A DNA stretch of 64,000 bases. Origin: Chara braunii. Taxonomy: Eukaryota > Plantae > Charophyceae. The stretch spans positions 4,788,502-4,852,501 of the forward strand of contig BFEA01000024.1 in NCBI GenBank assembly GCA_003427395.1. The letters are read 5' to 3'. Of the stretch, positions 24,259 through 48,049 are shown one piece after another. The notes beneath the pieces were generated by a model. That model saw only the letters and a list, made by a program, of their open reading frames with translations, was not told where the DNA came from and did no database searches. The position numbers and the translations under genes are program-made. Positions within the stretch are counted from its first letter, which is position 1; each line of letters begins with the position of its first letter.

Positions 24259-24649
24259 AGTACCCCGACTTTGATCATTTTTAAAACAACATTCGCCAAA
24301 TAAAAACATTTGAAACAATTCACGAGCATGGCCTAGGTGCCTGAGTAGCTACATAAAAAAAATCAAGGTCGCCAAAATTATTTTACGCCACCAAAAACAT
24401 TTTGGCGCAAACCACAAAATATGGATTTAAAAAAAATCTGATTCCTTTTTCTCGTTTTCTTTTCTTTTCTTTTTCTTTTTTTCTTTTCTTTTCTTTTTCT
24501 TCTTCCCTCCCCCCGACAACGAGGAGGCAGTTGGCACGTTGGGAGGAGTAGGTCCTCCTCTCTCCCATCCTCTCATTTCTCTCTCTCTCCCTCTCCACTC
24601 AACTCTTACAGTTCCTCCTCCATGCGTTTGTCGTGAGCCACGAGATTCA
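24259..24649 (+). repeat. About 390-bp repeat, inverted copy at 42157-42544
   Basis: Reverse-complement colinear from AGTACCC to GAGATTCA (e.g. gcatggcctaggtgcctg and ttggcgcaaaccacaaaata). Confidence 0.9.
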
Positions 24650-27600
24650 AGATCTCGCAGTCACGAATATTCATTTGTTCTGAGTGAGGAGCTAAACATG
24701 CTCCCACACAGCCTGAAAAGGTTGTTCTTCTGCCTTTTGTTCCTACGAGGTTTTTGCCTCGTTTTCACTTTGTTTCATTTTTTTCTTTTATAGGATGTCG
24801 TTGGCATAAGCCAACGGCTACAACAGTCATTACCACGCCTTGCTGGCGCCTTCCCCCGTCCCATCCAATGAGCGGACCTGAGTTCGATTCCCGTAGGGGA
24901 ATCGAAAAACAATTGGGCCATTTGTCGATTTATGAGTGTCATCCTTCGCGCAGAGACCATGTTGTATCTGAGCGACCGTTTCGACCGTGAGATCTAAAGA
25001 TCTCGCGGCCGAAAAGAGCCTCGCTTCATGCTTGCACGGTGGGACGCTCCCAAAATGGAGCTAGCCCAGACAGCGTATCGCCGGGCTCGATCCCAGCATC
25101 TGTTGGGTGAAGGTTCAATGCGGTAACTACTCGGCCTATCACGGAAGGTATCCTGTCGCCCTTCTATTTGAAGGGTTGCAGCCCAGTAGGCCGCCTATTC
25201 TTTGGCCTAGGCAGGCGCAGTCATGCCTTCCCCTGGCCTGGGCAGATGCAGTCCGCCTATCCCCTCCAAAGGCAGGTCACCTTGCCATCCTGCCAACCGG
25301 GCTTGGTCCAGTAGGCCCAACAATCCCCCTTTTGTCATAGGCTTGCCCTCGGACCCTTAACAGTCCGTCCTTTTAGAAAACACACCGCACTCTGGCTGTG
25401 TTAGCCCTTCTCACCGTCGGTGCACCCCTGGCGCTGTCGGTGCGAATACCCTTACAAGGGTATCCGCCATGGTTTTTGCAAGCGATAGAAGATAAGTTTG
25501 GTTAAAAGTTTAAGTATACCGTTGTCGGTGCGAATACCCTTACAAGGGTATCCGCCCTGGTTTCTGCAAGTGACATAAGGGTCGTCTGTTCACACTTCTT
25601 TGAGTGCTCGCACTGGTCAGAATGGTCGTCTGCGTATGGGCCAAAGTTATCTAAGTAGATAGGGTGGGTGGGCACACAGCTTAAGGCGCGCGTGTGATTT
25701 TGCTCTTTTGATCGTATGTCGGCATAGATGTCCGACTTGACTTTGCATTTTTGATTAGACCAAGGGTTGGTAGATTGGCCCTCGTTCGTCGTGCTCGACC
25801 GGCGGCAGGGCTGGTATGTGGGATGGTACGTGGGGCGGCATGAATACTTGGCGGTCGCACGCTTGGTTGTAGGAGGAGGTGAGGCTCCAGGCATGTCCCC
25901 AGCATTAAGCACGGGACCGCACCATCTCATATGGGGCTCAACGCCTGTTAATCCCAGGCTTGGGCTTAGCCCTATAGGTTGCGGCATTGGACTTGTGATA
26001 TGGAGGTGTGGGGGTCGAGGCCAACGGGCGACGGCGCGGGAGTAGCGGAGCAGCATGGAGGAAACCAAGGGGTTGAGGGCCCGACAGGGCTATCCCCCTC
26101 GGTTTTGTTGATAGGCACGGCGAAGGGGCCGACCTACGAGACTGGCGAGATGCCAGTAGCTCACTCCTATAAGACCAAATTTTATATTGTTACTTTTTAT
26201 TATTATTTCCTTGTTTTGGTAATAATCCCGTTCTCCTTGGGGCATAGTACCGTGACTGGGGTTGGTACCTGAGAGCCTGGCTCAGTAGAGGCATCCATAA
26301 ACCGTTGGAATATAGGCTGAGTTCGGGCCCACGGGAGGGAATTACGGTGGAACAAAGGCCCGACACTCAGGTGTGCCAAAAGGGGGGGCCGTCATTATCC
26401 ATCCAGTCGGCCCGGTTCAAGGCCCGAATGGCCTTTGGCAGTTCCGACTTTTGGCACACCTTTCACGTATGCCATTCTCTGTACCGTTCCAACTTTCACG
26501 GTGAGCTATTTCGGACGTGGGGCACTGGCGGTACAAGGCCCGAACAAAGGCCCGACACTCAAGTGTGCCAAAAGGGAAAGTTCCGACTTTTGGCACACCT
26601 TTGGCAGTTCTCCTTCGTCGTAAAGTCCGACCGGGGTGAGCTATTTCGGACGTGGGGCACTAGTTCGGTTGAGAACAATACAGAGAGGAGGAAGACGGGG
26701 AGTAAGGTGAGGACGAAGTGATGAAGAAGAAGGGTGAGAGGACATAACTCACTCATTTTTTAACAGGTTTGAGTGAGGGAAGAGGCAGTTCCGGGGTTCT
26801 GGCGCGCTGCTGAGAGGTTGGTCGCGACAGATTGTCGATCCAGGCAACATTTCGGTTGGTACTGGCTACGGGCGCTGCGCGGCCCCTAAGAGAGGTCTCG
26901 GGATATGGCGATGTATCTTTCCATGTTCAGGTGGTAGGTTTATTTAGTTTCGCTCGTACTACAAGTGGGAGTAACGGAAGGATAGTCGTGGGGTTAGAGA
27001 TTACTTGTGGGCCGGTGCGTTGCTCGTACCTGCGACCAAAGTAGTCTCCACCTGTCTCGCTACGTGAATGGCTGGAAAGTAGCGTATATTTCCATACTGC
27101 GGTGGGAGATTCATGCCAACTTTTGCTCACCTGGTCGATGGGAGTAGCAACTCTCTCCCCTTGGCGCACGCGAAGACTTCCACGTCTAACAGCCCTTCAT
27201 TCGTACTCGCGCTGGGATTAGAAGAGGAAGGAAGGGGAGATAGGTGCTGACTGATGTTGGGGCCACCTACACTGCTCCTCCGAAGGTGATCGACTGTCGA
27301 CCCAGTCGCGGTTCCGACTGTGTTCGTCGCAGCAACAGAGGTTGAAGAGCGTATCGGGCAGATGAGTACGTGCAGGCCAGCAGGGGAGCGGGCATGAAAG
27401 CTGCAAACGGGTACATGTGCAAGAGGAAGAGAGAGAGGAAGGCATGACCATGGTTACGGTAGGTGTATGTGAAAAGTTGCAGGTACATACTTGCGACCGG
27501 GCATATCGGGCGTGAAAGTACTTTGACAGGTTATGGCAAGAGGGGTGAGGATGATGACGTGAGAATAGTTTAGACGGGGGGGGTTTATAAGATCATTAGT

Positions 27601-28494
27601 CGTCATGCACTTTGATCGTTGTTGCCGATGCTAGAAGGGTGCATTGTCAATTTGAAGGCTGTTGGTAATGGTGCAGTAGCAGTGGTAGTAGTCTGAGGCG
27701 CTGGACACAAAGTAGGAGAGCTCTGGGTACATACGTCTGTGGTAGCGAGAGTGCACCTTCATTGACATTCAGATTCAGTGCGTTGGCGCTTTGTGGGCCA
27801 GACATCAGTGCATTTCTGGCATGTGAGCGGCTTCAGGGCTGCTGGTTTTCAACGAGGATTTGCGTTTTGGAGGGAGACAGAGCAGACCTACCTGTTGATC
27901 AGTGACGCCGTGTGCTGTCGAACGGAGCAGCACAAGGCCAGTCGCGGAGGTGCAGATTGGGCAGTTGGCTAAAGTGCGGTTCGATCATACCAAGGAGAGT
28001 AGTACGAAGCTGCCACGAGGCTGTGTATTTGCCTGCAGAAGTGAAGCATTGCGCAGTCTGTTTTACGGTGGTTAAAGGCAGCAACGGGGCTGCAGACTTA
28101 TCTGATTAACCGAGGTGCCGCTCATTCTGCGGCGCGGGGTAACGAGCAGAGAGGAGCAGGCTATGAAGCGGCAGCCTTTAGTGTTGCTCCCATGCTGGAG
28201 TCCAGGCCACCCCATTTGCTGTAGGCTCCACAGTTCTGCCTCGACTGCGGTGCTACGGCAGCGATTGCTGAGACTACCACGGGCTACTGCGCTGCCTTGC
28301 GTACGGCTGTTCGTCGCCGTGTGACTACAGATTGACCGGCGGTCCGCAGGTTGGCACGTGCATACGTTGCGGTTGCTGCTACCGAGAGTGGTTAGTGTTG
28401 CTGTTGCTAGGGGTGGAGGTGTGATGTGGAAGGTGAGGTTGAACTGCCAGGGAGGTGTTGTGGCGAAGTGGTTGAGTCAACAGTCTAACTGAAG

Positions 28495-28790
28495 TTTGGC
28501 CAAGCAGTTGCTGTGTTTTGGCCGTCATTGCGGGGGCCTCAGGCGCTGAAGATATCAAGACCCTCTCTTGCGAGTCTGAGTGCACCCCTCTTGGATCTGA
28601 GAGTCTCAATTCTATCTCCTTCTGCCCTTCTTACTCTGACTCTAGTCCATTGGTTCTGAGAGGAAGGCGGCACGAGGGATTGCAACCCGTAATCCGCGCT
28701 AAGGCCTCTGTGGGAGGATTGCCCCAACGATTGCGGGAACTCTGCCGGAACTCAGGAGGAGTTCTAGAGGCAGGGAACTCAGAGGTAATT
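28495..28790 (+). ncRNA. Conserved structured block, copy 1
   Basis: Homologous to 32610-32910 and 37990-38280, with compensatory stem changes. Confidence 0.55.
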
Positions 28791-29046
28791 ATTGCTTTGC
28801 CTTATAAGCCCAGTATAACCCCTACCTATACGTCTCCCCATGTATTGGCTGAATATGTTGTATGCGGCCCTACTTTGACTTTGAGCTGACTTTCATGACA
28901 CAAATTAGGCTAAGTAAACAAATGCATGTATGATGGCAATTCCAGTTTCTTTGTTTGTCTGAAAGCAGATTGTAATAAAGGGTTGCATCAGGGGGAAGGT
29001 TGGGAGGAAGAGAGTTTTGCTTGTGTCTGAACGGGTTTCATAGGGT

Positions 29047-29865
29047 GGCATCGTTTATAAGATGAACGGCCTGACTGCTGTGTTATTTTTGTTTTTTGAA
29101 GGACCAAGCATTGTTTCTAAGATTAATGGCTTGGTTGCTGTGTTTATTTAATTGTGCCAGGCATTGTTTCTAAGATGAATGACCTGGCTACTTACTTTGA
29201 GGGGTATTAATTGCTTAAGTTTTGAGGACCAGACAATGTTTCTAAGACGAATGGTCTGGTTGCTGTTTACTTTGGGTGGTTTTTGAATAATCTCTGGGTC
29301 TTGACCCAGAGTACTCTGTTTTTTTGTGTATTGAGAAAAGGTGGGTTGAGCATTGTTTCTAAGACGAATGGCTCAACTCTCCTTGGTTGTTTCATTCTGA
29401 GGAAGGTTCAGGCCAAAGGACTAGACATCGTTTCTAAGACGAATGGTATGAGTCTGAGGCCAAAGGACTATAATGAGAACAAAGGAATATGATTCTCGAT
29501 AAATTATATATATATATATATGAGAACAAGGCTAGCCAGACATTGTTTCTACGACGAATGGTCTGACTATAACCTTATCACAAACTAAGAGAGTATAATT
29601 AAGAGTTATAACTGAAGGTAACTTGGGCAGGCTGAGCATTGTTTCTAAGACGAATGGCTCAGCCCTACGCCCACTTTCGAAGATTGAGTTCAAAGAAGTA
29701 TATACAACTTGGCTATTTAAACAGTTCAGGGCGACTAAGCATTGTTTCTAAGACAAATGACTTAGTCATATGCCCAATGAAGAAAAAAGTAGTTGTGCAA
29801 CTTGTTCGTGTATAACTAAGGCAGAGAGTTGACATTGTTTCTAAGACGAATGGTGAATCTCAATG
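29047..29865 (+). repeat. Interspaced stem-loop array 1 (10 units; loop GTTTCTAAGACG/GATG)
   Basis: Units start at about 29047, 29103, 29156, 29228, 29345, 29419, 29533, 29625, 29729 and 29824. Confidence 0.95.
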
Positions 29866-30179
29866 TCCTATGTAAGCAGGGTATAAGGGGTTAAATCATT
29901 GAAGGACTATGAACTATTGTTGCTCAAGGTAATTTGGGTTGGTGAGAGTACTTACCCTTGTGGTTTGGCTTGCATATGGCTGAATGAGGTCACTAATTGA
30001 TGTGCTTACCAATGGCTTGTGTGCCGGTCGGATTTTTGCTTTTGATTAGTCTAGGAGTAAGAAGATTTTTGTCTACTAATTGATGTGCTTACCAATGGCT
30101 TGTGTGTACGTGCGGTGGGTGCGGCACTAGAACCGCAGTGGTCAATGTGCAAGTGAGCCGTTGTGTGACTTAGCCTTAG

Positions 30180-30286
30180 GACGGGTGGGAAACCCCGGGG
30201 CATGGGTCCCCGGTAGGAGCACCGCCCGTCCGTTGTAGTCGGTTGCAAGAGGTTTGAGTGTGAGCCTGCCCGATTGGACCTGAAAC
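30180..30286 (+). pseudogene. LSU rRNA fragment (D3 region)
   Basis: 'gcaccgcccgtccg..ggtttgagtgtgagcctgcccgattggacctgaaa' versus GCACCGCCGACCG..GGTTCGAGTGTGAGCATGCCTGTCGGGACCCGAAA. Confidence 0.6.
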
Positions 30287-32609
30287 GGGGGGGCGAGTGC
30301 GCTAGGGTAGGGGCTGCCCACTTGAACCCCCGCCCCCCCCCCCCTAAATATCGGACTTCAGAGCTTTATTTTGAATGTTTGCTACCACTGACAAGACCTA
30401 CACCAAGACCCGTTTCGCCTAGGCGCATGCTACAGGATCGGGGGAAACCCGCGCCCTCGATCCCTCGATCTGCAACCTGTGTGGGAGCCGGCCCGCAGGA
30501 AATTCGAAGAGTGGGAATTGGGCCTTAGTGATGTGGGGTTAGGGGCAACTCAAGGCAGAGGTCGAAGGCAATACGGTCATGCAAGTCATTCGACGAAGCA
30601 GGGTATAGGATCGAGAGACTAGTCGAACAGTCCGGTCCCCTCCGGAGATTTTTGTTGAACTGTTGATGTCTACACTGCGGAGCGGGAAGCGTTGTTGCCA
30701 CGAACACGAAAATGGTGGAGCCGATGATGGCGGGAGGTAGACTGGGCGTCGTGAAAAAGGCGTAGCTCGCTCGACTCCTACTGAAAACGGTCGGGGGAAG
30801 AGGCGATTTGGAGGCTTAAAGCTAAAGCGAATTGAATGGCAGGGTTAGAACGGCAGGAGAATCAGTAGAAAGAGAGTTAGTGAAGAAACGAAATGCGCGA
30901 AAAAGGTTCAAAGAGGAGGATATTGTGTGGGAGGAAAGACGGGTCTCCTTCCAGTTCTGAGTTAGTTGAGAGAGGGGAGAGCTAGAGATAGGGGTTTTCA
31001 AGGGTTGCGAACTCAACGGTAGTGTTAGATCTAGAGTTTAGTTGTCTAGTTTTGAGCAGTGCTAATAACGAGTTGCGTGCAGGAGGACCGGTTTCGGAGC
31101 GAGACGCATACTATCGTATTATTTGTGGAAGATTCATTCTTATTTTCACTTACCTTGTCAAATGTTCACCCTATCGACGGAAAACTCCCTCTCTTCCACG
31201 CATATACTCACGCACGCGTGTATATTTCTGTGTTTTAATAGTAGGTCTGTTCGATTTGACCCACCTACTTGCTGGTAGAAAGCAGTGTATGGTTCCTTGT
31301 TTTAGCGGTAGGTTCATCGATTCTTATTCGTTTTGTGGACAAGAGTAGTGTGAGAATCGTTGTGGGGTTGAAGACTACCTATTTAGTGGTGCAAAGCTCG
31401 TACTATCGATGGGAGTAACGTGAAGACCTGCTGGTGGTTTGTTGTTCGTCTCAATCGTACCAATGGTCTGAGTGCTCGCTACTGATGAGCTTCTTCTGAT
31501 GATGCTTTTCGCGGCAGGCATTATCGCACTGGAGCGAGAGTGTGCGATAGCACTCGGTTTTGCTGAGTTACTTTGGGATCACCTACGCATCTGCGAGATT
31601 GCAACCCGATTTGATATGCATGGAGTATAGGCATCAGGCGGGGGAGGGTACTGGCGAAGAGCAGGTGGACCAGACACAGTATACCTTCCACGTTCGTGCG
31701 TCCTGACTCGATCGACTTATCGATAGGACGAACGTAAGGTGGGCTGCGGGGATTAGAGGCTCACCTGTTATCTAGGGTGCTGCCCAACGCACCGTATGAA
31801 GCAGTTGTAAAGCCAGTCGGCATGGTGCTCTCTCATTAAGCAGGGCAACAAGGGAAGGAGGCTGCGAGGCCGCAACCTTACTAACTGGTCAATACGTCGT
31901 ATAACCGGTCAAATCGAAAGGGCTTGAGGCCAGTTACGAGTTGGAAGCTTACCTGTGGGGCAGTGTACAGCCCGCCCCGTCATGCGAAGTACTAAGAGCC
32001 AGCCACTGGGGTACAAGCTTGCTGGTTAGCGACTGCGCAACTCGTTCTCCTACATAGGACTGCAAAAGAGAGGGAGTGAGCTGTAAGACTGAAGACTTAC
32101 CTGCTCACTGATGCGCTACCCGAACTGAGGAAATTGCAGGCCCTGCTGCTGACCAATGGACCACCTATCGCATTAGTCGAAGTGGTAAGGAGAGTCAGCC
32201 ACGGGTTGAAGACTTACCTCCCGACCACGTGTTGCCCATTGAGCCAGTGACAGTGAACTAAGATCAACCGTGAAGTTGTCGAATTTGCAGATTAACTGGT
32301 GCGTTGCCCTTCATACCACCCGGAGTAGTGTGAGTCCAGCCATGAACTGAGTACTTGTTATAGCTTGGTGAGGGCTACATAGCCCATATCTACGCACACT
32401 TTGATGCTGCAAAGCCAGCGAGATCACACTACCACTCTGATGCGGCGTGAGAGAGAGGGTTGTGTCTTCGGCCCATGGCCCGTGGCTCGAGCGGTGGCCA
32501 GGGTCTTTCCGGACCACAAACTTTTGTGGGGGGGGGCTGAACTTGTTGAAGGGGAATATTGTTGCGGATTGGAAGGTCACCAGGGAAGTCAACAGTTAGC
32601 AGTTGTGTT

Positions 32610-32910
32610 TAGTTGACCAAGCTGCAACTGCGTCACAGTTCTGGCGACCATTGCGGGGGCCTCAGGCGTATCAAGGAATCAAGGCCCTTTCATGCGAGTT
32701 TGAAAGCACCTTTCATGAATCTGAGAGTCTCAAACCTATCTCCTTCTGCTCTTTTGACTCTAAGTCTAATCCTGGTTACGAGAGGAAGGCGGCAGGCGGG
32801 ATTGCAACCCGTAGGACCACATCGAGACTCTGTGGGGAGTCCACCCACGGATTGCAAGATCTCTGCCAGAACTTGGGCGAGGTTCTAGAGGCAGGGAACT
32901 GACAGGTATA
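32610..32910 (+). ncRNA. Conserved structured block, copy 2
   Basis: As for copy 1. Confidence 0.55.
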
Positions 32911-33154
32911 TCGTTCTCTAGCAGTATGAAGCCCCTATACCCCTGTTTGACTATCTCCCTGTAGTTTGATTGATTGTATGCATGTGTTCCCCTATGATTT
33001 TGCTTTCTTTCGAGATTTAATCAGACTAAATAGAAGGAATGTGTGCGAAAAGCTTAAGTTTCTTATTTATTTTTGACTGAAAGTAGACTAAGGGATGAAC
33101 TGAGAAAGTGGGAGGAAGACAGTTTGCTTTCGTTTGATCGAGTCAACCAAGAAC

Positions 33155-33920
33155 TGGGCATTGTTTCTAAGCTGAATGACCCAACACTATATTTATTTGA
33201 CTGTTTTTCTGAAAGACCAGACATTGTTTCTAAGTTGAATGACCTGGTTGCTGTGTTTAATTCTGAGGGTTCACCTGGCTGATCTTTGAGACCAAGCATT
33301 GTTTCGAAGTGAATGGCTTGGTCTGTCTGTTTCTTTTGGGATTTCTGACTGAAGTTGGACTAAAGAATCCAACTTCATGCTTTGAATGGTTTGAGAAAGG
33401 TTTAACATTGTTTCTAAGCTCCATGGTTTAATCTTTTGTTTTATTTTTGAGGGAGGATTTTTTGTCTAAGGCTAAGCATTGTTTCTAAGTTGAATGGTTT
33501 AACCTAAAAACCACGCACACAAGTATAAATTGCGTATAACAGGAAGTATCTTTACTTATATTTGCATCTGAACTGGCAGTTGGACATTGTTTCTAAGTTG
33601 AATAGTCCAACACGAAGCCATATCATTAAGAAGAGAAAGAAAAATACTGAGTATAATTGGAAGTAATCTAGGCAAGCTGAGCATTGTTTCCAAGCTGAAT
33701 GGCTCAGTCCCCTGCCCATATTTTTATTTATTTTGAAAACAAAGTCAGGAAATTATTAAATTTTGGTTATTAAAATTTTCAGGGCGACTAGACATTGTTT
33801 CTAAGCTAAATGGTCTAGTCATATGCCCAAAGAATAGAAAAGTAGGTATGCAATCTGTTCGTTTATATTCTAAGGGCATGCAAGACATTGTTTCTAAGAT
33901 GAATGGTCTAGCTCCATGCC
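33155..33920 (+). repeat. Interspaced stem-loop array 2 (9 units; loop GTTTCTAAGYTG)
   Basis: Units start at about 33155, 33216, 33289, 33399, 33469, 33579, 33671, 33782 and 33875. Confidence 0.95.
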
Positions 33921-34199
33921 ATATGTAAGTTGGGTATAAGAATTAAATCATCTGCAAGTTCCATGAACTATCTATGAGGATTTTTACTTGGGGATGGTGA
34001 GATAACTTACCCTTATGGTTTGACCTGCATGTGACTGAGTTTGATTATTTAATTAGTCCGAGTTTCAGTTAGATAGGAAGTTGCTTTAGATGCTCACCAC
34101 GTGCTAGAGCGATAGCAGTTAGTTCAATTTCTGCATTTTCTGAGCTAAGTTTATTTAGGTCGATTTCTGCATTTTTTTGGAGAATTTATTATACTTGGT

Positions 34200-34506
34200 C
34201 TTGTATAAATCTTGGTAAGCCACTTTCTCTACGGGAAGCGCTGCCGAAATTTTTACAAAACTAAGGAGTTAGTTAGATTTTGTCTTTTCAAAGTTAAGCT
34301 TGTCTAACTTTTATACATCGTTTAGTAAAAATCTAAAAAGTCTTTTTTTCTAAAAAGAGTGTTGCCCAAATTTTTACTAATTCAAGGAGTCAGACAAAAT
34401 TGGAGCTTGAGAAGTCAAAGTTATTTCTAGATTTTTGAACTTAGCTATGTATAAATCTTGGAATAACACTTTTCTAAAAGAAGTGCTGCCGAAATTTTTA
34501 CAAAAC
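34200..34506 (+). repeat. About 125-bp tandem repeat, 3 units
   Basis: Core 'gtataaatcttgg..ttttcta..gtgctgcc.aaatttt'. Confidence 0.85.
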
Positions 34507-35402
34507 CGTCTCCACCGAACCGACAAAGTACCCACCCGTAGAAACTGTCCACCATGGGTCGATCATAGTACCGATGTCGGTGCGAATACCCTGACAAGGG
34601 TATCCGCCCTGGTTTTTGCAAGTGACAGAAAAATAGTTTTAATCTATAGTTTAGGTATACCGCGCTAGGCACGACTGCGTCTGTATTTTACGTTGATAGG
34701 ATGCTTGACTAGAGTAGAGAGTGTGTGGGCGCGCAGGTTTAAGGCACGCGTGATTCTTTTCTGCTGTCGATNATTGGTCGTTTGTTTAATANTATTATTA
34801 ATATCTACTTATATTTGANTAAGCAGGAAACAGGGATATTTTCGGTTGATTGGTACGCTTGATTAAGGCGAGAGCGCGTGCGGGGGGGGAAACCAAATAC
34901 GNCATCGGCAATAGGGGCGCGATTTTGTACGGTGAGCAGGATGTCGTAGGATGGCGCGCGGGGCAATTATGGCATGATATAAACAAGTCAACGCGGGCAC
35001 TGGGAGCCGCGCAGCNGGTTTGTTGGCCCAAAGCATCGCGCCGCACTGCCTACATGGTATTCTGCGGGATTCAGCCCCAGGCTTGGGCTTAGCCCATAAG
35101 TTACGGCATTGGGTTGACGTTACGAAGGTTTGGGGATCGAGGCCAGCAGGCGTCGGCGGGGCAACTGCAGGGGAGCGTCGCGGAAGGGACCGACAGGGTT
35201 GAGGGCCGTCAGGGCTATCCCCCTCGGGTTTGCTTACGGGCGCGGCGGCAGGGCCGACCCGCGGCGATAGAGTCACATGGGGTGTGTTGTATTCGCGGGG
35301 GTTGCCTGAAGTGCAATTACAGACCATTTTTCGTGGCTGCGTCGGAGTCGCGCCTCGTCTTGTCTNGGGACGCGGCGCGGTGGGTGTGCGGCAGGCCCTA
35401 AG

Positions 35403-35462
35403 GGCCTAGCTCAGTGGGTACGCCCATGAACTGGTGGGATACAGACCCGTGTTCGAACCCGG
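35403..35462 (+). promoter_or_regulatory. tRNA-like Pol III internal promoter (A and B boxes)
   Basis: TAGCTCAGTGG (35406-35416) and TGTTCGAACCC (about 35449-35460) at tRNA-like spacing; no complete cloverleaf. Confidence 0.55.
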
Positions 35463-35530
35463 AATGACGAAACTTGATAAGTAAAACCAAATATTTTAAA
35501 TTGTCGGGGGCTGGTTAGCCCGGGGACCGT

Positions 35531-35644
35531 GTCCTTCGGGACATTCGTCAAAAATTGGAAAGATACAGAGAAGTTTAACATGGCCTCTGCGTGAGGATAA
35601 CGCGCACAAATCAGGACGAGGTCCGACGGCTGGATGTTTTTTTT
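35531..35644 (+). pseudogene. Near full-length divergent U6 snRNA copy
   Basis: GTCCTTCGGGAC 5' stem, AAATTGGAA.GATACAGAGAAG, ATGGCC.CTGCG..AGGAT.AC, CACAAATC..GGTCC, then T8. The catalytic AGC reads AAC. Confidence 0.9.
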
Positions 35645-35851
35645 CTGAGTCTTGACATTTACGTGCCGTCGGGCCGACACTGCGCGGTATAGGGCGAACG
35701 GAGTAACAAGGATTGTCGGGTAATGAGACCAGGCCATTGCGGGTGTCGGGCGCTGCGCTAACAGTAGGAGGGGAGGGCAGGCAGTGCAGCACTAGAGAGA
35801 GTGAGGGAGCTTACCTGGCGGACGAACGGGGACGCGAACCTGTGTCAGGCG

Positions 35852-35959
35852 CTGTGGCAGAAGTTCGCAGCGGTGTTGCCGCGCACATCGGACTTTGGGT
35901 ATAGAGTCAAAGACTAATCGAACCGTCTAGTACCTGGTTCCCTCCGAAGGGCCCTCAGG
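35852..35959 (+). pseudogene. LSU rRNA fragment
   Basis: 'gggtatag..aaagactaatcgaaccgtctagtacctggttccctccgaag..ccctcagg'. Confidence 0.9.
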
Positions 35960-35979
35960 CGGGCGCTGGCTGGTACAAA

Positions 35980-36040
35980 GTCCTTCNGGACATTCGTAAA
36001 AATGGGAACGATACAGAGAAGATTAGCGCCGTCCGTGCGC
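35980..36040 (+). pseudogene. U6 snRNA 5' half
   Basis: gtccttcnggacattcgtaaaaatgggaacgatacagagaagattagc. Confidence 0.9.
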
Positions 36041-37245
36041 TCGCACTGGAATATAAGCCGCGGGATGGTCTGAGCCTCGCGGTTGCTCGTTTCAAGAGAC
36101 ATCTCTCCTCCACTCGGTACAGTATGGTCGGATGTACTGACGGGAAGCAGCGTTGCGGGATAGTAGAATTGGGCGTCGAGGTGGGGAGCGAAGCGACCGA
36201 TAGCNCGGGCGGACGGACCGTGGGGAAGGAAAGACGGACCTGGCGCGAATCCGCGCTGGGTACATATGAGCATTGGCAACAGAGGGAGAAGACGAAGTGC
36301 CGACAGCGGTGCGACGGGGGCAAAGGTAGGGGACCGGGCGCAAACCGGGCAAAAAAAAAAAGGGGGTTGATCCTGGCCGATGAAACGATCCAGGTGCACG
36401 CGCGGAAATGGTAGGTGGAGCGCAGGGAAGAACGGATAATTCGTGTGAAGTACAACAGGATCGGGCGGGGGAGGAGTCAGGTCTGACGTTTTGGGGTAAG
36501 ATGAGGAGGATGGCGAAGTTAGTTTTGGTGTTGGGTTAGTAGATTTAGAGGTTAGCGGAGAAAATCCGTGCGCTATAGCTATGGTAGAGATGGCGNGAGT
36601 GNNAATNGCCTAGCCCACCCGCTCCTCGACGAAAACGGGTGAACAAAGAGGCGTTTCAGGGGCTTTGGGGTGCGGCGAGTTGGATGGTGCGACCAGATTC
36701 GGCAATGAGGTTGCGAACTGTGTATGCTGTTGGTCGGAGGTTGCGCCTGGGGAGTGGCCGGTGAGTATGGAATGGATCTGACCATAGGCCAACGGTAGGT
36801 TCGTTCAACGTTTGAGTGTTTTATTGATGGAGTGAGCANGGGAGAGGGGTAGTTTCGTGAATGTACCATGAATACTTCCGCGTTTTAGTGGAAGATTCAT
36901 TCGATTNTTGCTTATTTNTAGAGGCAGTGCACGGCTGGCAGCGCCAAGGGAGACAAGACGGAGTGACAAAAGGGGTGAGTAGATGTGGATGGGGTGTCGT
37001 GCGGACACGTACGGAGTGAAGGGAAGAAAATCCTACCTACTCGGCCGNCGTTGAGCCAAAGGCTGGATGAACCCGGGCGCGTCACTGCGCCAGATTCATT
37101 CGAAGGAAGAAGTTACAGATAAGTAATGAAATAGACGAGCGGGTGGTGAGCAGATGGGCGAGGTAACAACAAGGAAGGGCCGGAGCTCGATGTGACAGCT
37201 GACGACTTACCTGCTAGCGGGTACTTTGACCCCCTACGAAGGATC

Positions 37246-37323
37246 GGCGGTGCATGGCCGTTCTTTGTTAGTGGAGTGATTTGTCGACTGAGAAGCTCTT
37301 TTCTTGATCCTATGGGTAGTGGT
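37246..37323 (+). pseudogene. 18S rRNA fragment in permuted order
   Basis: ggtgcatggccgttctt..gtggagtgatttgtc is followed by gactgagaagctcttttcttgatcctatgggtagtggt. Confidence 0.85.
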
Positions 37324-37989
37324 ACTGTGGATGCTGCAGTGTTCCGCGGTGCTTGCTGCTGACTGCGGAAGGAGCATAGAAGGCTGATGTGCACTACGGG
37401 ATACTACTGCTGCCCACATACACTTCGGCTGTGCCAGTGGACTGGGCACGAGAGCCGGCGGCTTGACATGGGTTGAGCATAGATTATTACTACGGGCGGC
37501 TGCTGACTGGGTGAAATTGTTGTTGTGACTGTGGACTGCGGATCTGTGGATTGTGGACTACCATTGCTGCTGCACAGTTACCGGGTATTACGACATTGCT
37601 GATAAGCACTGCTGGCCGCTGGGCTGACGGAGATCAAGTTGGCAGTGAATCATTGTACTCGACATCTGTGGGCAGGTACCTGCTGTGCGTATAGGCTTTT
37701 GCTGATACCTCCACTGCTGGTGTTGCCCGCTATAGTGTGATCCGGCCGCTGCGGCGCCTCCCTTGTGACTCCNTAACTGTGTGTCCTGCTGCACCTCTTT
37801 TCTTCAGCGGGGTTGCTGTAACAGCAGTTAAATGTGGACCACTGTGCCCTGGCTGAAGTTGCATGATCAAAGTTTCAGCAGGAGAGAACTGTTGTGGTAG
37901 TGCGATTGGACTGTGAGAAGGGAATTATAGCAANNATTGGGAGGTCGTCAGGGGGGGGGGGGTTGGTCTCAGCAAGTTGGCACTCATCA

Positions 37990-38280
37990 GTTTTGATCAA
38001 GCTGCCACAGTTGGCCGCCATTGCGGGGCCCTCAGGAGCATCAAGACTACAAGGCCCTCACCCGCGAGTCTGAGAGCATCATTCTTGGATATGAGAGTCT
38101 CACGCTTTTCTCCATCTGCCCTTCTCAGTCTAAGTCTAGTCCTTGGTTACGAGAGGAAGGCGGCAGGCGGGATTGCAACCCGTAAGTCCGCATCAAGACT
38201 CTGTGGGGAGTCCACCCACCGATTGAGGGAGGTCTGCCGGAACCTAGGCGAGGTTCTAGAGGCAGGGAATTGTCAGGTAA
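37990..38280 (+). ncRNA. Conserved structured block, copy 3
   Basis: As for copy 1. Confidence 0.55.
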
Positions 38281-38512
38281 ACCACTTCCACCTGTACAAC
38301 CTTCTACTACCCATGTTTGCCTATATCGCTACAGTATGACTGTTGTATGCATGCGTTTGTCCCTATGGTTTTGTTTTCTCTTCAGGACCTAATCAGATTG
38401 AATGGAAAGAATGTGTGTTCCTACTTTGTTCTGATCGAAAGCAGACTAAGGATGAACTGGGGGAAGGTGGGAGGAAGGCAGTTTTGCATGTGTTTGACCG
38501 GGTCAACCAAAG

Positions 38513-39212
38513 CCTGAGCATGGTTTCTACTGTGAATGGCTCAGGGATATGTTTATTTGACTGTTTTCTGAAGGACCAGGCATTGTTTCTACTGTGAATG
38601 GCCTGGTCGTTGTGTTTATTTGATTGTTTTCTGAGGAACCAGGCATTGTTTCTACTGTGAATGGCTTGGCTACCTTAGTTAACTCTGAGGGTTGCCTGAT
38701 TAAAAGGGGGGTTTAAATTCTTGTTTATTTCTTGAGGGAGAACTTTTGGTCCAAGGCTAAGCATTGTTTCCATGCTGAATGGTTTAGCCTGAAAACCGCG
38801 CACATAATTTAAACTAAGTATAAAAGAAAGTATTTTATGTATATTTGCATGTGAACTGGCACCTGGGCAGTGTTTCTACTGTGAATGGTCCANCGTTAAG
38901 CCATATCATTAAGAAGGGAAAAAGGAAAATACAAAGTATAAATGGAAATAGTTTGGGCAAGCTGAACATTGTTTCTACTGTGAATGGTTNAGTCCACTGC
39001 CCATATTTGCCTTTTCTTTTGAAAATAAAGTCAGAAAAATACAAAATTTTCTTGGATATTAAACAGCACAGGGCGACTAGGCATTGTTTCCATGGCGAAT
39101 GGCCTNGTCGTCTGCTCAAAGGAAGAGAGAAGTAGTTGTGAAACCTGTTCGTATATATTATAAAGACAAGCTGGACATTGTTTCCATGGCGAATGGTCCA
39201 GCTCTATGTCTT
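38513..39212 (+). repeat. Interspaced stem-loop array 3 (8 units; loops GTTTCTACTGTG, GTTTCCATGCTG and GTTTCCATGGCG)
   Basis: Units start at about 38513, 38574, 38639, 38754, 38864, 38955, 39071 and 39169. Confidence 0.95.
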
Positions 39213-39489
39213 ATGTAAGATGGGTATAAGGATTCAAGAACTTGAGGATTCATGAACTATCTACATGGAATAAACTTGGNATGGTGAGAGNACTTACACT
39301 GGTGGNTTGGCTTGCATGTGACTGGATGAGATGGCTAGTTTGTTTAAGTTTTATTACTATAGGTAGTTGCTTTAGTTGCTCGCCATNTGCTAGAGNCNTA
39401 GGAGTTAGTGTCAATTCCTGCATTTTATNTAATAACGTTTTTTTTTTTTACTTAGGTCATTTCCTGCATTTTCTGAGATTTTTTTTGGC

Positions 39490-40220
39490 TTTGTATAAAT
39501 CTTGGCAAGCTACTTTTCCTACGGGAAGCGCTGCCGAAANTTTTACAAATCCAAGAAGTTAGCCAACTTTTGACTTGTCAAAATTCAACTTGTCCTTTTT
39601 ATNTATCTGGCTTAGTTAAAATCTGGGAAGTCTCCTTTTCTAAAGGGAGTGCTGCCCAAATTTTTGCTAATTCGGGGAGTTAGACAAAAATTAAACTGAG
39701 GGAAGCCAAAGTTACTTTCAAAATCTGAACTTAGCCTTGTATAAGTTTTGGAATAACACTTTTCTAGAGGGAGTGCTGCCGAAATTTCTACAAAATTAAG
39801 GAGTTAGTTAAATTCAGTCTAAAAAGTTGAACTCGAGCTCTTGTTCGAGTTCATATCTAGAGTTAGACAGAATTTGATTATCCAGAGTTACAGATCGTTT
39901 CTGTTTTTGTATCCGACTTAGTATAAATCTGGGAAGTCTCCCTTTCTAAAGGGAGTGCTGCCCAAATTTCTACTAATTCAGAGAGTTAGACATAATTTGG
40001 TTTTCGAGGAGTTAGAGATTGTCTCCTGCTTTATATCTGACTTAGTATAAATTTGGAAAGTCTCATTTTCTAAAGGGAGTGCTGCCCAAATTTCTACTAA
40101 TTCAGGGGGTTAAACAAGATTTGGTTTTCCAGAGTTAGAATTTATTCATATTTTTCATATTTAGACTTGTATAAATTCTGGAAAGACAATTTTCCTATGG
40201 GAAGCGCTGGCAAATTTCTT
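39490..40220 (+). repeat. About 125-bp tandem repeat, about 6 units
   Basis: 'ttttctaaagggagtgctgcccaaattt..ctaattc..ggagttagac' recurs. Confidence 0.9.
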
Positions 40221-42156
40221 TGGTTTAGAGGAGATAGATTATATTTTGACAGGTGGTGATTCAGGCGATCCACCCAGAATAGGTGAGAGTCTGTAGTTGA
40301 TCTACCTTTAGCTTAAGCATTTGGTTTAAAAAGTAGACTTAGGTTTAGCTTGTAAGAAGATCTTGAGGAAGGATGTATTATGAAATTGTATTCTTAGCTT
40401 GGGAATTGGTCTGTCGTGTGTTACAGGTTCTTTTGATCTTTTGATTCGAGATCAGGATTAGATCCAGCTTGATCCCTNNNNNNNNNNNNNNNNNNNNNNN
40501 NNNNNNNNNNNNNNNNNNNNNNNNNNNNNNNNNNNNNNNNNNNNNNNNNNNNNNNNNNNNNNNNNNNNNNNNNNNNNNNNNNNNNNNNNNNNNNNNNNNN
40601 NNNNNNNNNNNNNNNNNNNNNNNNNNNNNNNNNNNNNNNNNNNNNNNNNNNNNNNNNNNNNNNNNNNNNNNNNNNNNNNNNNNNNNNNNNNNNNNNNNNN
40701 NNNNNNNNNNNNNNNNNNNNNNNNNNNNNNNNNNNNNNNNNNNNNNNNNNNNNNNNNNNNNNNNNNNNNNNNNNNNNNNNNNNNNNNNNNNNNNNNNNNN
40801 NNNNNNNNNNNNNNNNNNNNNNNNNNNNNNNNNNNNNNNNNNNNNNNNNNNNNNNNNNNNNNNNNNNNNNNNNNNNNNNNNNNNNNNNNNNNNNNNNNNN
40901 NNNNNNNATCATCTGTTATCACTGATAACAGGTCGGTTGCCGATTCGTCGGTTTACGACTCAATTTCAACTCACCCTCTACTCTCAACCTAAAAGGCTTT
41001 AGCCCTGGTGAATTTTATTGTTTTATTAAGGTTTCACCCGGACTTTTATTGAATGGCCATTTAACAAAGGTGCTGAGTATTTAATTAAGGTTGGTTGGAC
41101 AGGAGGTTTGGGGCTTGCATGGCTAAAGCGAGGGGTATGAGCGTCGAAGGTGGTTGGGGTTGACTCCGTGTAGTGTGTGGGCTGTTGATTTGTTTTTTCG
41201 TNGGTGTGATGGCAGGTATGTGCTGTGAATCAGATTTCTGGATTTGGTTGCCTGCGATCACACATATACGTATTATTGTGAGAAAACCCCAGCGAAACCA
41301 TGAGGAGCGATCGTCATATATTTGACCCTTATATATGTATAAATGGACATGCTTGGGATGAATGTTTGCATGGGTTGAAGAATCCCCATATTACAGCCCC
41401 ATCCAGAAGCTGGGACTGAAGAACTTAGGGGAGGCCCCTACTTCTATTTTTATTCTTGCTTTTTGGGGATCTTCTTAGTCGGACGTTTGGTCCTGGGCTG
41501 GCATTCGAGGTCCTTGTCCAGGACATCTCCAGCCCTAGGCTCTGCAGGGGAGGGGTTTTTTCCTCGCGCAAACCCTATTTGATTTGCCTACCGAGACGCT
41601 CAGGTTAAGAGCCTAAGGCGTCGCGGCGGCTGCACGACTATTTCTTTCAGCCGTGCAATGTCGTGAAGGGTTAGGCCCTCACGACACTTCAAGTCTGACA
41701 CTTGAATGTCATAAGCGGTACTCGGATCCACGAGGGACCGCTTGATTATGGGCACTTCATAGTACACCATCATTGCGACTGCTTGCGTACGTTTGCATTG
41801 CGAGTCGATATGAGTAGGCCCTGCGTCCGCGCGTTTTTATCCTAAAGTCTCGCGCGCGACAGCTAGTCGATTTTGCATCGGAAAGTTATGGGACGGCTAC
41901 CGAGGGGCTAGGAGCGTTGTCGCGTTGTTTGTGTCGTGTCGTTTCGTACGTGTGCGTGTACATGTTTTATGTTCTCGTGTTCGTAAAGTGGAGTGCGCGT
42001 GGTGTGTGGGAAGCGTCCTAGTCGACCGACGATGAGTCGCGCTTGGGACCTCAGCCCCCCAAGGTGTCGGTTCGCGTGCGGGTTCAATAGAGGCGTATTA
42101 CCGCGCGTACCCCCTATGCTACAGCGAACGAGAAACGCCCTCGGCTGGTTCACCTA

Positions 42157-42302
42157 TGAATCTCGCGGCTCACGACTCACGCGTGAAAGAGGAACTGTGG
42201 GAGTTGAGTGCAGAGGGAGAGAGAAAAATGGGAGGATGGGAGAGAGGAGGAAATACTCCTCCCGACCTGCAAGCTGCCTCCTCACTATCAACGGGGGGAA
42301 AG

Positions 42303-42334
<32 letters not shown>

Positions 42335-42544
42335 AGAAAACGAGAAAACGGGATCAATTCTTTTAAAAATCAGTATTTTGTGATTTGCGCCAGGATTGTT
42401 ATGCTGGCATAAAACAATTTTGGCGGCCTTGATATTTTTTTATGTAGGTAGCCACTGGCCAGGCACCTAGGCCATGCGTGTAAATTGTTTCAATTTTTTT
42501 AATTCGGCGAATGTTTTTTTTTAAATCATCAGAGTTAGGGTACT
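42157..42544 (-). repeat. Inverted copy of 24259-24649
   Basis: Direct reverse-complement comparison. Confidence 0.9.
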
Positions 42545-43781: not shown

Positions 43782-43910
43782 GAGGTGTTGTCCGCTTTGT
43801 GGTACGACGAGGTGTTGTCCGTTTTGCGGCAGGACAAGGTGCTGTTCATTTTGCTGCACGACGAGGTGTTGTCCATTTTGCGGTAGGACGAGGTGTTGTC
43901 CATTTTGCGA
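43782..43910. repeat. 27-bp minisatellite, about 5 copies
   Basis: gaggtgttgtccattttgcggtaggac-like units. Confidence 0.9.
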
Positions 43911-46841
43911 CATGGCGGAATTGACGTTCTGGTGGGAATATGCTGCCAAATTTTCCCGGCGTCAACGGAGGTAATTTTTGCAGCGTTATGCTGCCGAAAT
44001 TGGGGTTCATCAGGTGGCACTAAGAGGGGAGAAGGTGCTGGTTTTCTTTTGGTGTGTCGAGGGACACGCCGTCAAAGTCGGTGAATAGGTAAATTACAGT
44101 GAGACTGTTGTGGCGGTACGACGAGCGACATCAATAGTATTGACGACAGTCTGCGTGTGGAACCACGTCTATCAAGGTGGAACAACACGCCAATTTTTAT
44201 TTTGCACATGTCAGCGGCGGTGGGGCCATTTGACCTTGACCTAGTGAAACTTTGGGACCGACGGAGCGCGTGAGTGGGATTGGCGGTGCCGGTGAAGTGG
44301 GAACTTGAGTGTTCGATTTTCTTTTGAGAAGTGTGGTGAAGACTATTTTGGCAAGTGACCTCGTCAGATGCTGGAAGGAATAGTGCAGGACCACTTGGGA
44401 CCATCTGGGATCAGTTGGGACCGCCTAGGACCATTTGGGGCTAGGTGGGACATGAGTGGGCGGCGCAGTGACCATTGGGAGTACGTGGCACTTGCGGTTT
44501 TGACAGTAGGGAGTGTTATTATTTTTTTTTTTGTAGAGCATAGTGCATAACAGTTTCGGTAGTTGGGGCCATCCGATGCTATAGACCGTAGTGCGGGACC
44601 ACTTGGGATGACCTGGGATAAGTTGGGACCGACGCAGGACGCGGTGAATTTTTTTTTGGACGAGTGCGGCTCGCTACTCTCACACTTGAGACTCCCACGA
44701 GTGGGATTTGCGAGTCAAGAGTAAATTGGGACTAGCAGTTGACCCAAGACTTACCTCCGGACTGCGGTTTCTTCGGCGACACGTATATGTTACTTGACTT
44801 TCTTGAGTGAGCCACGACACGTTCGACACCACTTCACTCAAGGTCAATTGATTGACTCAGATTCTTTTTCACACCTGTGTGAACCCACACTTTGCTTTAC
44901 CATGTTTGTTTTGAATGTTCAGAAGAAAAGGTTGAGTAACGCGTGTGTGGTCATGCATGTGGAAAGTGGGAGTATGGGTTGCTGAATTTCTTGGACCTGT
45001 GGTTGTTTGCATGTTGTGAAGGTAGGTAGAAGAATATTATAAAGGACAAGTTTGATGGTGCTTACTTGAGAAGATGAAAAATATTGTCTTCTTTTTACTT
45101 CTCACCTACCTGCGTGTCAAGAAAGTTGCATTTGTTTTGAAAAATGTTAATTTAGTATGTGCTGTAAAATGAATTTGATTCAAAGAAAGAAGATAAGATC
45201 AAACACACTTGCTTTTTTTCCCGAGGATTTATCCTTTCTATCCCGAATGACCTTATTTACGTATACATGTCTAAATGATTCTCATTCTCTATCACCTCTG
45301 ACTCTTTTTCGTCTAAATTACCTTGAGCATGAGAAAAAATGAGAATAACTGAAGGAAAAAAAAATAATTGCGGTGAACACGTTCTCTTTTTCAAAGGAAG
45401 CATCCGAGACGGGGGTTCGTTGCTTTAGGAGCCGGCCCTGTTATCGACCCAGAGCGGACCGTTCTACCGGGGGGGTATTTTGCCGATTCGGTGGAGACAA
45501 CTCGACTTCTTAGATCCGAGTCTTGTGCTCGTGCGAGGAGGAGGATTACCCCAGACCACTTCCTAGAGGGAGAGATATGCAACACCTTAAGTAATGCACC
45601 TGATCAAGAATCATTCACAAAGCAGTGTGTCATCCAAGAAAACTAAGGATCTGTGAAGACGGATGTGCGGCCTAATCTTACGCCAGTGGTAGTTGGAATG
45701 AATGACTTTGGCGACGCATCTCATCAAGTCAAAACTAAGGTTATCCAACTATTTTGTCGGCTGCATTCAGGTTATTGGCGAAGCCAACTTTCAGTTGGCA
45801 GCTTAGTATAATATTTTGTTTTATCGATTGCGATTCGAAGTGGTCGAATTTTATTTTGATCTTGTGTTCATTGGATGTACCATATAATGATTTAGATTTT
45901 TTTAGACTGGATATGTATTCCCGTCGGCTTCGATCGACTCTTTTCTATAGAACTATGTGTGGTTGTTATAACTTTCTTTTGACGAGTATCTAAAAAGACT
46001 ATGATTGACTTGTGGGTTTCACGCTTGGTTGAGACTGTCCTAGTCGATCGGCGTACGCTTTGTTTTTAGGAGATCAACGTCCTAATGAACGAACATCGTT
46101 CGGGTTCAATAGGCGTTTTAATTGCTCGTACCTATACTACAGCGAGTGACCAAACGCCCTCGGCTGACCTACCTCTGCAATTGCATGTACAAGTTTTTTC
46201 ACGTGGGTCAGCAGCTCGGTAGGGGTACGCCGCTAAGGGTGGTGACAACCCCTTAGGGAAGCAAGTTGTGCCCCCCGGGAACCTATCTTGTTGAAGCGGA
46301 CCGCGAAATGTACAGTTGGCGTACCCGGCTAGAGTGGCGAAGGGACGACGCGACCTCACTCATCTCAGCGGTTCGCTGTGTTAATTATGCATTGTCCCTG
46401 AGTTGTCTCTTGATTTTGTTTTTGTTTAAACTTATGCGTAACATGACCTGGAGGGCTTCTGCCTCTTCGAGAGAAAAGGCGGGGGACGATGCACTAGACA
46501 GGTGGCGCCGTTGCCTAGGATAACGGCAAACTACCGTTGTCCCTGGTGGAACGACACTCAAATATTTTTATTGAGTTATTTTGATTTCAAACGAGCATCT
46601 CTTGAAAATAGGCATAACGACGCACTGTTGTGAAAGATACTTTTAAAAAGTAGATGCATCTTCTCTTATCAATGTTATTTCCTTAGAAGGCAAGGTATGA
46701 TCTGATCGTCTTCCGCTTACCTCGACGGAATAGTAGGAAAATCTTATATTATTTAGATGTTAACGATGATAGACTTTATAAGTCATTTTGACTTCTTACC
46801 TTTATGCCTTATTGCTTGCAGGTTAATCCTCTCATAGCGAG

Positions 46842-47814
46842 ATGGCGGATGGTAGCAAGCCGAATGACGGTCTTTCGCACAAAATAGAGAAATTGATCGA
46901 GATGCTTGGAGACAAGATCGAGAAAACAGCTATAGCTTCTAAGATCGACATTCCGGTTTTTAACGGGTATAATGTTTTGAAATTTCTTTTAGCATATGAA
47001 CAATCATTGGTTGTTGCTCATGAGTGGGATGAGCGGACAATGCATAAGAGGGTGATGGCATTGATACATATAGATGTGCGAGATGACGTAGCGAAGTTGG
47101 TTTCTGCAGCTTAAAGTTTGAGTGATTTCGATCAGGCAATGTTCGATACATTCCAACTTGGTAATGAAACTTTAACTCTTGACGATCTTCGGAAAGTATG
47201 TCGGAACAAGTTTCCTACGTTCGGAAAGTTCTTTGTTGTGTTTGAGCGAGTGGGCCCGTCTTGTTCCGGACCTCTCAGAAATTGATAAGAGTATTATATT
47301 TTTTGCAAACTTTTCTGAGGTAGAAATACGATTTTTATTGAAAGGTGTCAGATTTTCTTTTGTCTGGCAGAATATTCGCGAGAATGCCTTGAACGATGGT
47401 TTTGATCAAGTTCTTCATCCGGATTTGAAAAACATGCATCGGTAATTAGTCTCTAATAGCAGTTCATACCAGCATGATGGACGTATTTTGAAAGAACTTT
47501 CAGAGGTTAAAGAATATTTGAAAGCCATGACAGAAAACAATTTCGAAACGACAGTCGTTGTCCGGTTGTCGAAGGAATGTAATGAAATGAGGCGGAAGGG
47601 TACGGTTTACTCTTCAGTCATAAAAGTAAGGAATAGATGAGAAGAGGTTTACCTTAATCCTCGGGACGTATAAAAAGTCGCTAACGTTGATTATGCGGCC
47701 AATGACAATTATGGTCATCGTCACTCTCGACGAGCTGGGAATTGGTGGAAGAAAGTGAGGTGTCATTGTTGTGGTTTGATAGGACACACCCCACGTTATT
47801 GCCCATCTCGATAG
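46842..47814 (+). pseudogene. Retrotransposon gag with CCHC zinc knuckle (disrupted)
   Basis: 'KIDIPVFNGYNVLKFLLAYEQ' (gag capsid-like start); 47761-47802 encodes CHCCGLIGHTPRYC (C-x2-C-x4-H-x4-C). Confidence 0.75.
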
Positions 47815-48049
47815 AGGAATGATGTGAAAAAGTAATTAGCGAGACGCATCCAAGCGCGAAGTAAGGAGAGGTTTTGGCAGATTTATAAGTAAGCCATTGG
47901 TTGTTGGAATAAAAGGGTGTTCAATATTTGATTTTGGTAAATTGTGGTGGATTTGGTATTATCGCTGCCGACATTTTCTCTTTGGAGTTGTCATTCCTCA
48001 AACATTGACTGAATGTATAATAGACATATGTTTATTTCTCAGTCATGAT

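Follow-up and report, generated by a model that had tools for sequence, protein, structure and literature searches.

The stretch analysed here (the window) comprises 64,000 nucleotides (nt) of the charophyte alga Chara braunii (contig BFEA01000024.1, positions 4,788,502 to 4,852,501). It is eukaryotic and repeat-rich, with remnants of long interspersed nuclear elements (LINEs) and, outside the hairpin arrays that are the subject of this report, plant-type U6 and large-subunit (LSU) ribosomal RNA (rRNA) fragments recognised by Rfam. No tRNA genes were found in the window. Three copies of a repeated module each carry an array of small, interspaced hairpins whose six-nucleotide loop changes in concert within an array. 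This subfamily-specific change of the loop is the main feature here, and the preliminary description of the region missed it. The arrays are as follows.

29041-29861, + strand: hairpin array 1, ten units, with loops TAAGAT or TAAGAC and one TACGAC.
33151-33914, + strand: hairpin array 2, nine units, with loops mostly TAAGTT or TAAGCT.
38511-39204, + strand: hairpin array 3, eight units, with TACTGT at units 1, 2, 3, 5 and 6 and CATGGC or CATGCT at units 4, 7 and 8.

A relaxed motif scan finds 27 units in the window, all on the + strand; the minus strand has none. When the window is searched with a covariance model derived from these units, the 27 come back with no extra one, which bears out the original count of 27 units in three arrays (10+9+8) at 29047-39212. 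Each hairpin is about 37 nt long, and the spacers between units are 16-81 nt long and 55-81% AT. They had been described as non-repeated AT-rich sequence of about 20-85 nt; the AT-richness stands but the absence of repetition does not, because spacers recur between arrays. There is also a 63-nt tandem repeat within array 3 (38518-38666). Since the three arrays are copies of one module, their units are not independent. Units have been gained and lost among the copies, and loop deletions have left remnants of arms behind. These are not clustered regularly interspaced short palindromic repeats (CRISPR), since orthologous flanks recur from array to array, the DNA is eukaryotic and no exact match occurs in viral contigs.

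The module also lies on three further scaffolds of the BFBZ01 series (L001, L014 and L021), found by a metagenome scan that gave 33 matches. We take these scaffolds to be leftovers of the C. braunii project. The remaining 30 of the 33 are single matches with no second unit, some of them labelled as gut metagenome, and were treated as chance. Exact-pattern scans of viral contigs and prokaryotic genomes gave no match.

The arms of each unit covary. Within a unit they make Watson-Crick pairs at 5.41 of 7 positions, and permuting arms among units lowers this to 3.28+-0.27 (maximum 4.30 in 10,000). Double-sided cells in the 7-bp arms number 61, while shuffles give 25.7 (0 of 500 reach 61), and sliding the partners yields at most 12; all three controls ignore phylogeny. 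Where orthologous units of different arrays show double changes, the pair is kept in 20 of 32. It had been proposed that the arms differ freely yet stay paired. The pairing is upheld, but variation is far from free: the arms conform to the pattern 5'-RRCYRRR / YYYRGYY-3', and compensated changes are nearly all transitions (G-C/A-U or C-G/U-A). The arrays are more stable than dinucleotide shuffles on both strands (z from -1.7 to -4.8). G-U pairs had been thought to favour the + strand weakly. This could not be sustained, because arm mismatches comprise 15 G-T and 10 A-C (p=0.42) and so do not indicate a strand.

The loop behaves in the opposite way to the arms and flanks. When units at seven orthologous positions of the three arrays are compared, identity of the loop hexamer is 76% among units of one array and 52% between orthologous units (permutation p=5e-5). 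In contrast, the arms are 62% identical between orthologous units and 42% within an array, and the flanks 62% and 30%. In other words, loops follow the array whereas arms and flanks follow the position, a pattern that block duplication alone cannot give. The loops of all subfamilies share the consensus Y-A-N-K-N-Y, and the two loop types of array 3 recur at the same unit positions in L014 and L021. The window contains a subfamily-specific motif arrayed in non-coding DNA. That 6 nt should change in concert inside units that are otherwise position-specific is an evolutionary puzzle of its own.

How is this hexamer presented? The units were originally drawn with a shared 4-bp upper helix, a 12-nt loop and a 3' purine bulge. 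None of these shows covariation among the 27 window units, where the core varies too little. An alternative fold with a C-G pair, a 5x2 internal loop, a 3-bp UUC/GAA stem and a hexaloop is equally stable (-7.7 vs -7.2 kcal/mol for the 12-nt-loop fold), and it is backed by L001. That scaffold has the same conserved block and orthologous arms as the window module, and its units place UAAGUU or UAAGAU on the closing stems CCA/UGG, CUA/UAG, CAA/UUG, CUG/CAG and UUC/GAA. Across these five stem variants 29 of 30 pairs are Watson-Crick, compared with 16.5 by permutation (p=5e-5). The L001 alignment thus supports a predicted hexaloop on a short closing stem over the 12-nt-loop fold. Moreover, the occurrence of the same hexaloop on different closing stems means that the core was not simply copied whole. 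The L001 array (minus strand, about 850 down to 30) has a 5'-to-3' gradient from new to old cores: units one to eight are of the new type and unit nine is intermediate, after which unit ten has the core seen in the window and the final unit is without a loop.

The core had also been called fixed. In the window this is true of 14 constant positions, at which 3.6% of cells are off consensus while the modules themselves are only 65-77% identical (that is, they differ at 23-35%). It is not true of the hexamer, which is array-specific, and in L001 the rest of the core has been replaced as well. Nevertheless, the arm covariation, the L001 closing-stem covariation and the conservation of the core in diverged copies together support the earlier suggestion that the pairing structure was probably selected.

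Downstream of the small hairpins, two of the copies carry a second kind of array.

34194-34510, + strand: second array of copy 2, three repeats of about 124 nt forming long imperfect hairpins (apical loop U-A-N-R), truncated at about 34507 by another repeat.
39484-40231, + strand: second array of copy 3, six repeats of about 124 nt forming long hairpins with cUACGg, cUAAAg and cUAGAg loops.

Here too there is covariation: double-sided cells number 26, while shuffles give 9.9 (0 of 500 reach 26), although the structure was predicted from the same alignment and the counts therefore lean towards that structure. On the + strand U-G, C-G and U-A pairs interchange, and many of the pairs are U-G.

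The module as a whole consists of a conserved block, splice-like sites, the hairpin array and the array of long hairpins. Its three copies in the window include two that are truncated. The features that define it and the element around it are listed below.

25435, + strand: a second TGTCGG-type start near copy 1 (motif position).
25523-25580, + strand: 5' terminus of element copy 1, starting TGTCGG and then a hairpin; 93% identical to 34569-34630 over 62 nt.
28518-28784, + strand: copy 1 of a conserved block (about 270 nt) that closes with a conserved hairpin and a donor-like G/GTA, GT at 28785 (alignments).
28864-28908, + strand: candidate acceptor, a U-rich tract plus AATYAG; the AG also ends at 33024 and 38396.
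29940-29957, + strand: conserved TG/GTGAGA donor-like site followed by ACTTAC, GT at 29942; GT counterparts at 33997 and 39284.
32640-32905, + strand: conserved block, copy 2, with donor-like CAG/GTA, GT at 32906 (alignments).
34575-40930, + strand: element copy 3, a whole TG...CA-bounded unit of 6.36 kb with termini TGTCGG to ...GATAACA, putatively a giant long terminal repeat (LTR).
38011-38276, + strand: conserved block, copy 3, with donor-like CAG/GTA, GT at 38277 (alignments).
40386-40426, + strand: candidate 3' splice acceptor ttacag/G, conserved in L014.
40914-40930, + strand: terminal palindrome ending ...ACA, then possibly a degenerate primer-binding site (PBS).

The first candidate acceptor lies 119-128 nt past the first donor in all four blocks that have that region. 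The TG/GTGAGA site is kept in five of five copies and folds as a small hairpin in three. With a conserved acceptor-like site upstream of it, the hairpin array could be exonic. A coding role for the conserved block was rejected, as the reading frames are interrupted from one copy to another and Pfam gives no match. The block folds no more stably than shuffles (z between -0.3 and -1.9), with few compensatory changes. By inspection, no covariation accompanies pairing between the first donor and the ACTTAC motif. There are also several ACTTACC motifs, which resemble minus-strand donors or the 5' end of U1, at 31148-32220 and at 37205, in low-copy 5' parts of elements. They suggested a minus-strand gene, which is less likely given the + strand RNA described below.

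The unit that contains copy 3 is probably a decayed giant LTR, judging from its ends. It has the 5'-TG...CA-3' termini of a Ty3/Gypsy LTR, copy 1 begins in the same way, and scaffold L014 stops one base beyond the end of copy 3 (40930). Like such LTRs the module is a dispersed high-copy repeat, found in the three further scaffolds as well as here. The sequence after 40930 resembles a PBS located at 46503 only if a 4-nt deletion and one mismatch are allowed. The N run at 40479-40908 probably has a spurious length, as L014 has about a dozen bases between the same flanks. The 5' half of copy 3 carries U6, tRNA-box-like and rRNA fragments. More generally, fragments of LSU rRNA, U6 and (by eye) small-subunit rRNA occur in the 5' halves of elements (22107-22960, 30248-30285, 35530-35641, 35980-36040 and about 37240-37320), apparently as captured cellular RNA.

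Sequencing reads were placed on 28400-34300 (5,901 nt) at 80% likeness, with 6-13% of each RNA run sampled. The module has very many copies, as the DNA reads show: contig depth, when summed, stands at about 95,000-150,000 for the blocks, 7,000-72,000 over the arrays and 290,000 on downstream repeats, compared with 25-135 on the low-copy stretch 30370-32536. The module is thus 100 to 3,000 times higher, a rough figure in which depth is not copy number. Two poly(A) RNA runs (X5 and X7) cover the blocks with first mates that lie almost exclusively on the minus strand (28 vs 0 and 46 vs 0.3 for block 1). Reads on the sense rRNA fragment at 30248-30285 show the same orientation, so the block RNA is + strand. 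Because nearly all reads are less than 95% alike, they come from other copies, and the window locus is close to silent. Reads that leave block 1 at 28777 continue into sequence absent from the window; either a divergent copy left unspliced or an exon joined by splicing could account for it.

What, then, are the arrays for? We favour a multivalent RNA binding site that co-evolves with a putative protein partner encoded by the element and serves packaging, export or elongation, and we consider this about evenly balanced between right and wrong. Compensatory stems suggest a folded single strand, and the splice-like sites, the + strand RNA and the U-G-rich neighbouring array favour RNA over single-stranded DNA (ssDNA). 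A loop shared across one element and different in the next, carried by stems whose sole demand is pairing, is the pattern expected of a multivalent site in co-evolution with a subfamily-specific protein. The arrays would be cis-acting structures in the + strand leader (R/U5) of a giant-LTR retroelement family of C. braunii, of which the three window copies would be decayed insertions. Each unit would be a stem presenting the 6-nt loop (Y-A-N-K-N-Y) on a short closing stem, and the stems would need only to pair. The loop may be read sequence-specifically, most likely by an element-encoded RNA-binding protein such as a Gag nucleocapsid or a Rev/Tat-like accessory protein, with eight to ten copies providing avidity. 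If loop and protein co-evolve, each subfamily would recognise its own RNA for packaging, nuclear export or elongation. The preliminary description had proposed a multivalent scaffold with 8-10 similar sites. One part of it, a selected single-stranded structure with 8-10 sites, is supported by the pairing and core evidence above. A free-standing scaffold or sponge is less likely, because the arrays lie within a high-copy mobile repeat and a cis signal on the element's own RNA is the likelier use.

Several observations do not sit well with this idea. The two loop types at fixed positions in array 3 mean that one protein would need two specificities, and protein searches identified no candidate partner. 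Those searches, with the neighbouring gag-like remnant, the open reading frame over block 3 and a LINE reverse transcriptase piece, gave no usable relatives, although query-length limits mean that the blanks say little. For the window copies there is no paired LTR, no clear PBS and no gag or pol adjacent within the window; before copy 3 (34575) there is no polypurine tract, and its flanks (ACCGA and GGTCG) differ, so there is no target-site duplication. The lack of a duplication, of a clear PBS and of adjacent gag or pol is the reason that the giant LTR is only probable. RNA-seq mapping, which had been suggested as a check, did reveal + strand RNA of the adjacent block from other copies, but the hairpin arrays themselves are hardly covered in two of the three runs (depth 0-2 in X5 and X7). 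Divergence of the expressed copy could explain this gap next to a covered block. In the third run (X6) both strands are represented and minus-strand RNA outweighs plus-strand RNA across the arrays, unlike in X5 and X7, and no GT-AG junction read is present among the joints shown. Finally, the arm controls take no account of phylogeny, and transitions, which make up the compensated arm changes, are also the commonest type of mutation.

Could the reader of the loop be a host protein instead? A site for an export, stability, localisation or silencing factor, with loops turning over through a host arms race or by drift within a tolerant consensus, seems unlikely. The common consensus Y-A-N-K-N-Y and the coexistence of two loop types in array 3 would both suit it, and the constitutive transport element (CTE) of Mason-Pfizer monkey virus is a precedent for a host-protein site (PMC12789967). 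However, with one host protein in one genome there is no obvious cause for copy-specific concerted switching at orthologous units. An origin with no adaptation at all is quite improbable in our estimation. Tandem duplication would have made the arrays, short gene conversion or template switching by reverse transcriptase across the constant core would have homogenised the loops, and quasi-palindrome-templated mutation would have kept the pairing. The gain and loss of units, the arm remnants left by loop deletions, the preponderance of transitions and the L001 gradient from new to old cores are all in keeping with such an origin. What does not fit is that one hexaloop sits on five different paired closing stems in L001, that the core is far more conserved than its surroundings, and that a second, independent array covaries too. 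Conversion tracts would also need ends within a few bases either side of the loop, at every unit.

A signal at the DNA level is improbable too. It would be either a double-stranded motif array for an element-encoded anti-silencing or activator protein, like that of VANC, or a set of ssDNA hairpins used in reverse transcription or integration. The VANC target motifs are indeed subfamily-specific non-coding arrays that evolve together (PMC5735166), the Chara arrays are poorly covered by RNA and the arm mismatches have no strand preference. Yet double-stranded recognition has no need of compensatory stems, the neighbouring array depends on many U-G pairs on one strand, and the hairpin array is flanked by splice-like sites and + strand RNA. 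The remaining suggestion, which we regard as very doubtful, is that the loops pair with RNA, whether in kissing-loop dimerisation of two genome copies, with a guide or target elsewhere in the element, or in small-RNA processing. A pairing code would suit concerted change, and loops with CATGG or TAAGCT can pair with themselves (-3.8 and -3.1 kcal/mol). Self-complementarity is absent from the most frequent loops (TAAGAC, TAAGAT, TAAGTT and TACTGT), and no loop has its reverse complement at a homologous place within the module. A processed small-RNA array, the alternative put forward at the outset, finds no support, as hairpins of about 37 nt fall below the length of plant pre-miRNAs and it is the loop, not a duplex, that stays constant.

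The multivalent binding site that we favour has counterparts elsewhere. The arrays resemble known cis-acting RNA signals of retroelements in their working but do not belong to any named one. [quoted passage not shown] Element and viral proteins with a cognate RNA include Tat (TAR), Rev (Rev response element, RRE), Rex (Rex response element, RexRE), Rem (Rem-responsive element, RmRE) and Gag (Psi), which are used for elongation, export and packaging (PMC12789967). The human immunodeficiency virus TAR/Tat and RRE/Rev, human T-cell leukaemia virus RexRE/Rex, mouse mammary tumour virus RmRE/Rem and Psi/Gag pairs are like the window arrays in being stem-loops in or near the LTR and leader, beside a splice donor, and in their proposed role of marking the element's own RNA (PMC12789967). 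The Chara arrays differ from them in having 8-10 regularly spaced copies, position-specific stems, a loop that changes in concert and a green-algal host, and in that their partner and splicing are putative. The first description had not recognised the motif as the iron-responsive element (IRE), the selenocysteine insertion sequence (SECIS), the histone stem-loop or the hammerhead. Rfam agrees, with no match over any array at the gathering threshold or at E up to 5 (IRE, SECIS, histone 3' stem-loop, hammerhead, CsrB, TAR, RRE and CTE). A literature search, whose coverage mostly excludes the subscription literature, found no description of these arrays.

Arrays of motifs that change together are also found in the VANDAL (Mutator-like) transposons of Arabidopsis. 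These have subfamily-specific motif arrays in non-coding regions, with units that change together and a proposed co-evolution with an element protein (PMC5735166). The VANC arrays are like the Chara arrays in consisting of short subfamily-specific motifs in non-coding regions, changing together. However, VANC recognises DNA in double-stranded form, and tandem duplication is how its motifs spread, whereas in Chara only the loop changes in concert, within orthologous compensating stems of a probable retroelement. The compensatory stems, and the lack of a transposase among the open reading frames inspected, set the arrays apart from a double-stranded motif that works without folding in a Mutator-like element. 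CsrB and RsmY sponges and engineered MS2 or PP7 arrays likewise consist of many small hairpins with one loop motif for multivalent protein binding. Compared with these, the Chara arrays have no GGA loop or Rfam match, are eukaryotic, lie in a high-copy mobile repeat and have a loop that differs by subfamily. Large retrotransposon derivatives (LARDs), which are non-autonomous LTR elements, and Cassandra, a terminal-repeat retrotransposon in miniature (TRIM) with 5S rRNA, are long units without open reading frames that have structured RNA and captured Pol III or rRNA fragments, and the Chara elements likewise hold U6 and LSU pieces. The literature found does not describe, as a feature of theirs, interspaced hairpin arrays whose loop code changes in concert.

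Other repeats share the window. A separate element at 45400-47900 has an LTR-like end, a broken gag-like frame and, at 46503, the PBS mentioned above (TGGCGCCGTTGCC); protein searches found it no relatives. On the minus strand, broken frames at 2496-4400 contain what by eye are reverse transcriptase, RNase H and methyltransferase pieces of a DIRS-type element, the tested pieces having no Pfam match, and a LINE remnant at 60260-62131 has Pfam RVT_1 and Exo_endo_phos matches. A short interspersed repeat family occurs in both orientations (24259-24649, 41984-42544 and 49703-49875). Tandem repeats of 27 nt and 132 nt with GTTGTCC lie at 43782-43909 and 48095-48441, and their resemblance to the VANC6 motif is probably chance.

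To our knowledge, little is known in plants and algae about how LTR retrotransposons pick their own RNA from among thousands of relatives. Perhaps the Chara arrays belong to a green-algal retrotransposon lineage with an RNA-sorting system like that of complex retroviruses. This is a tentative idea, and one we would sooner doubt than accept. Its MS2-style array would have its loop code rewritten in all units per subfamily, in step with the lineage's own RNA-binding protein, so that related elements and non-autonomous parasites could be distinguished; a templated conversion of short tracts, of a kind not yet recognised, may underlie the concerted rewriting. The modular array and its visible subfamily-specific loop make self-RNA selection directly testable by loop swaps. 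If cognate proteins exist, the subfamilies would constitute a natural set of orthogonal RNA-tag/protein pairs.

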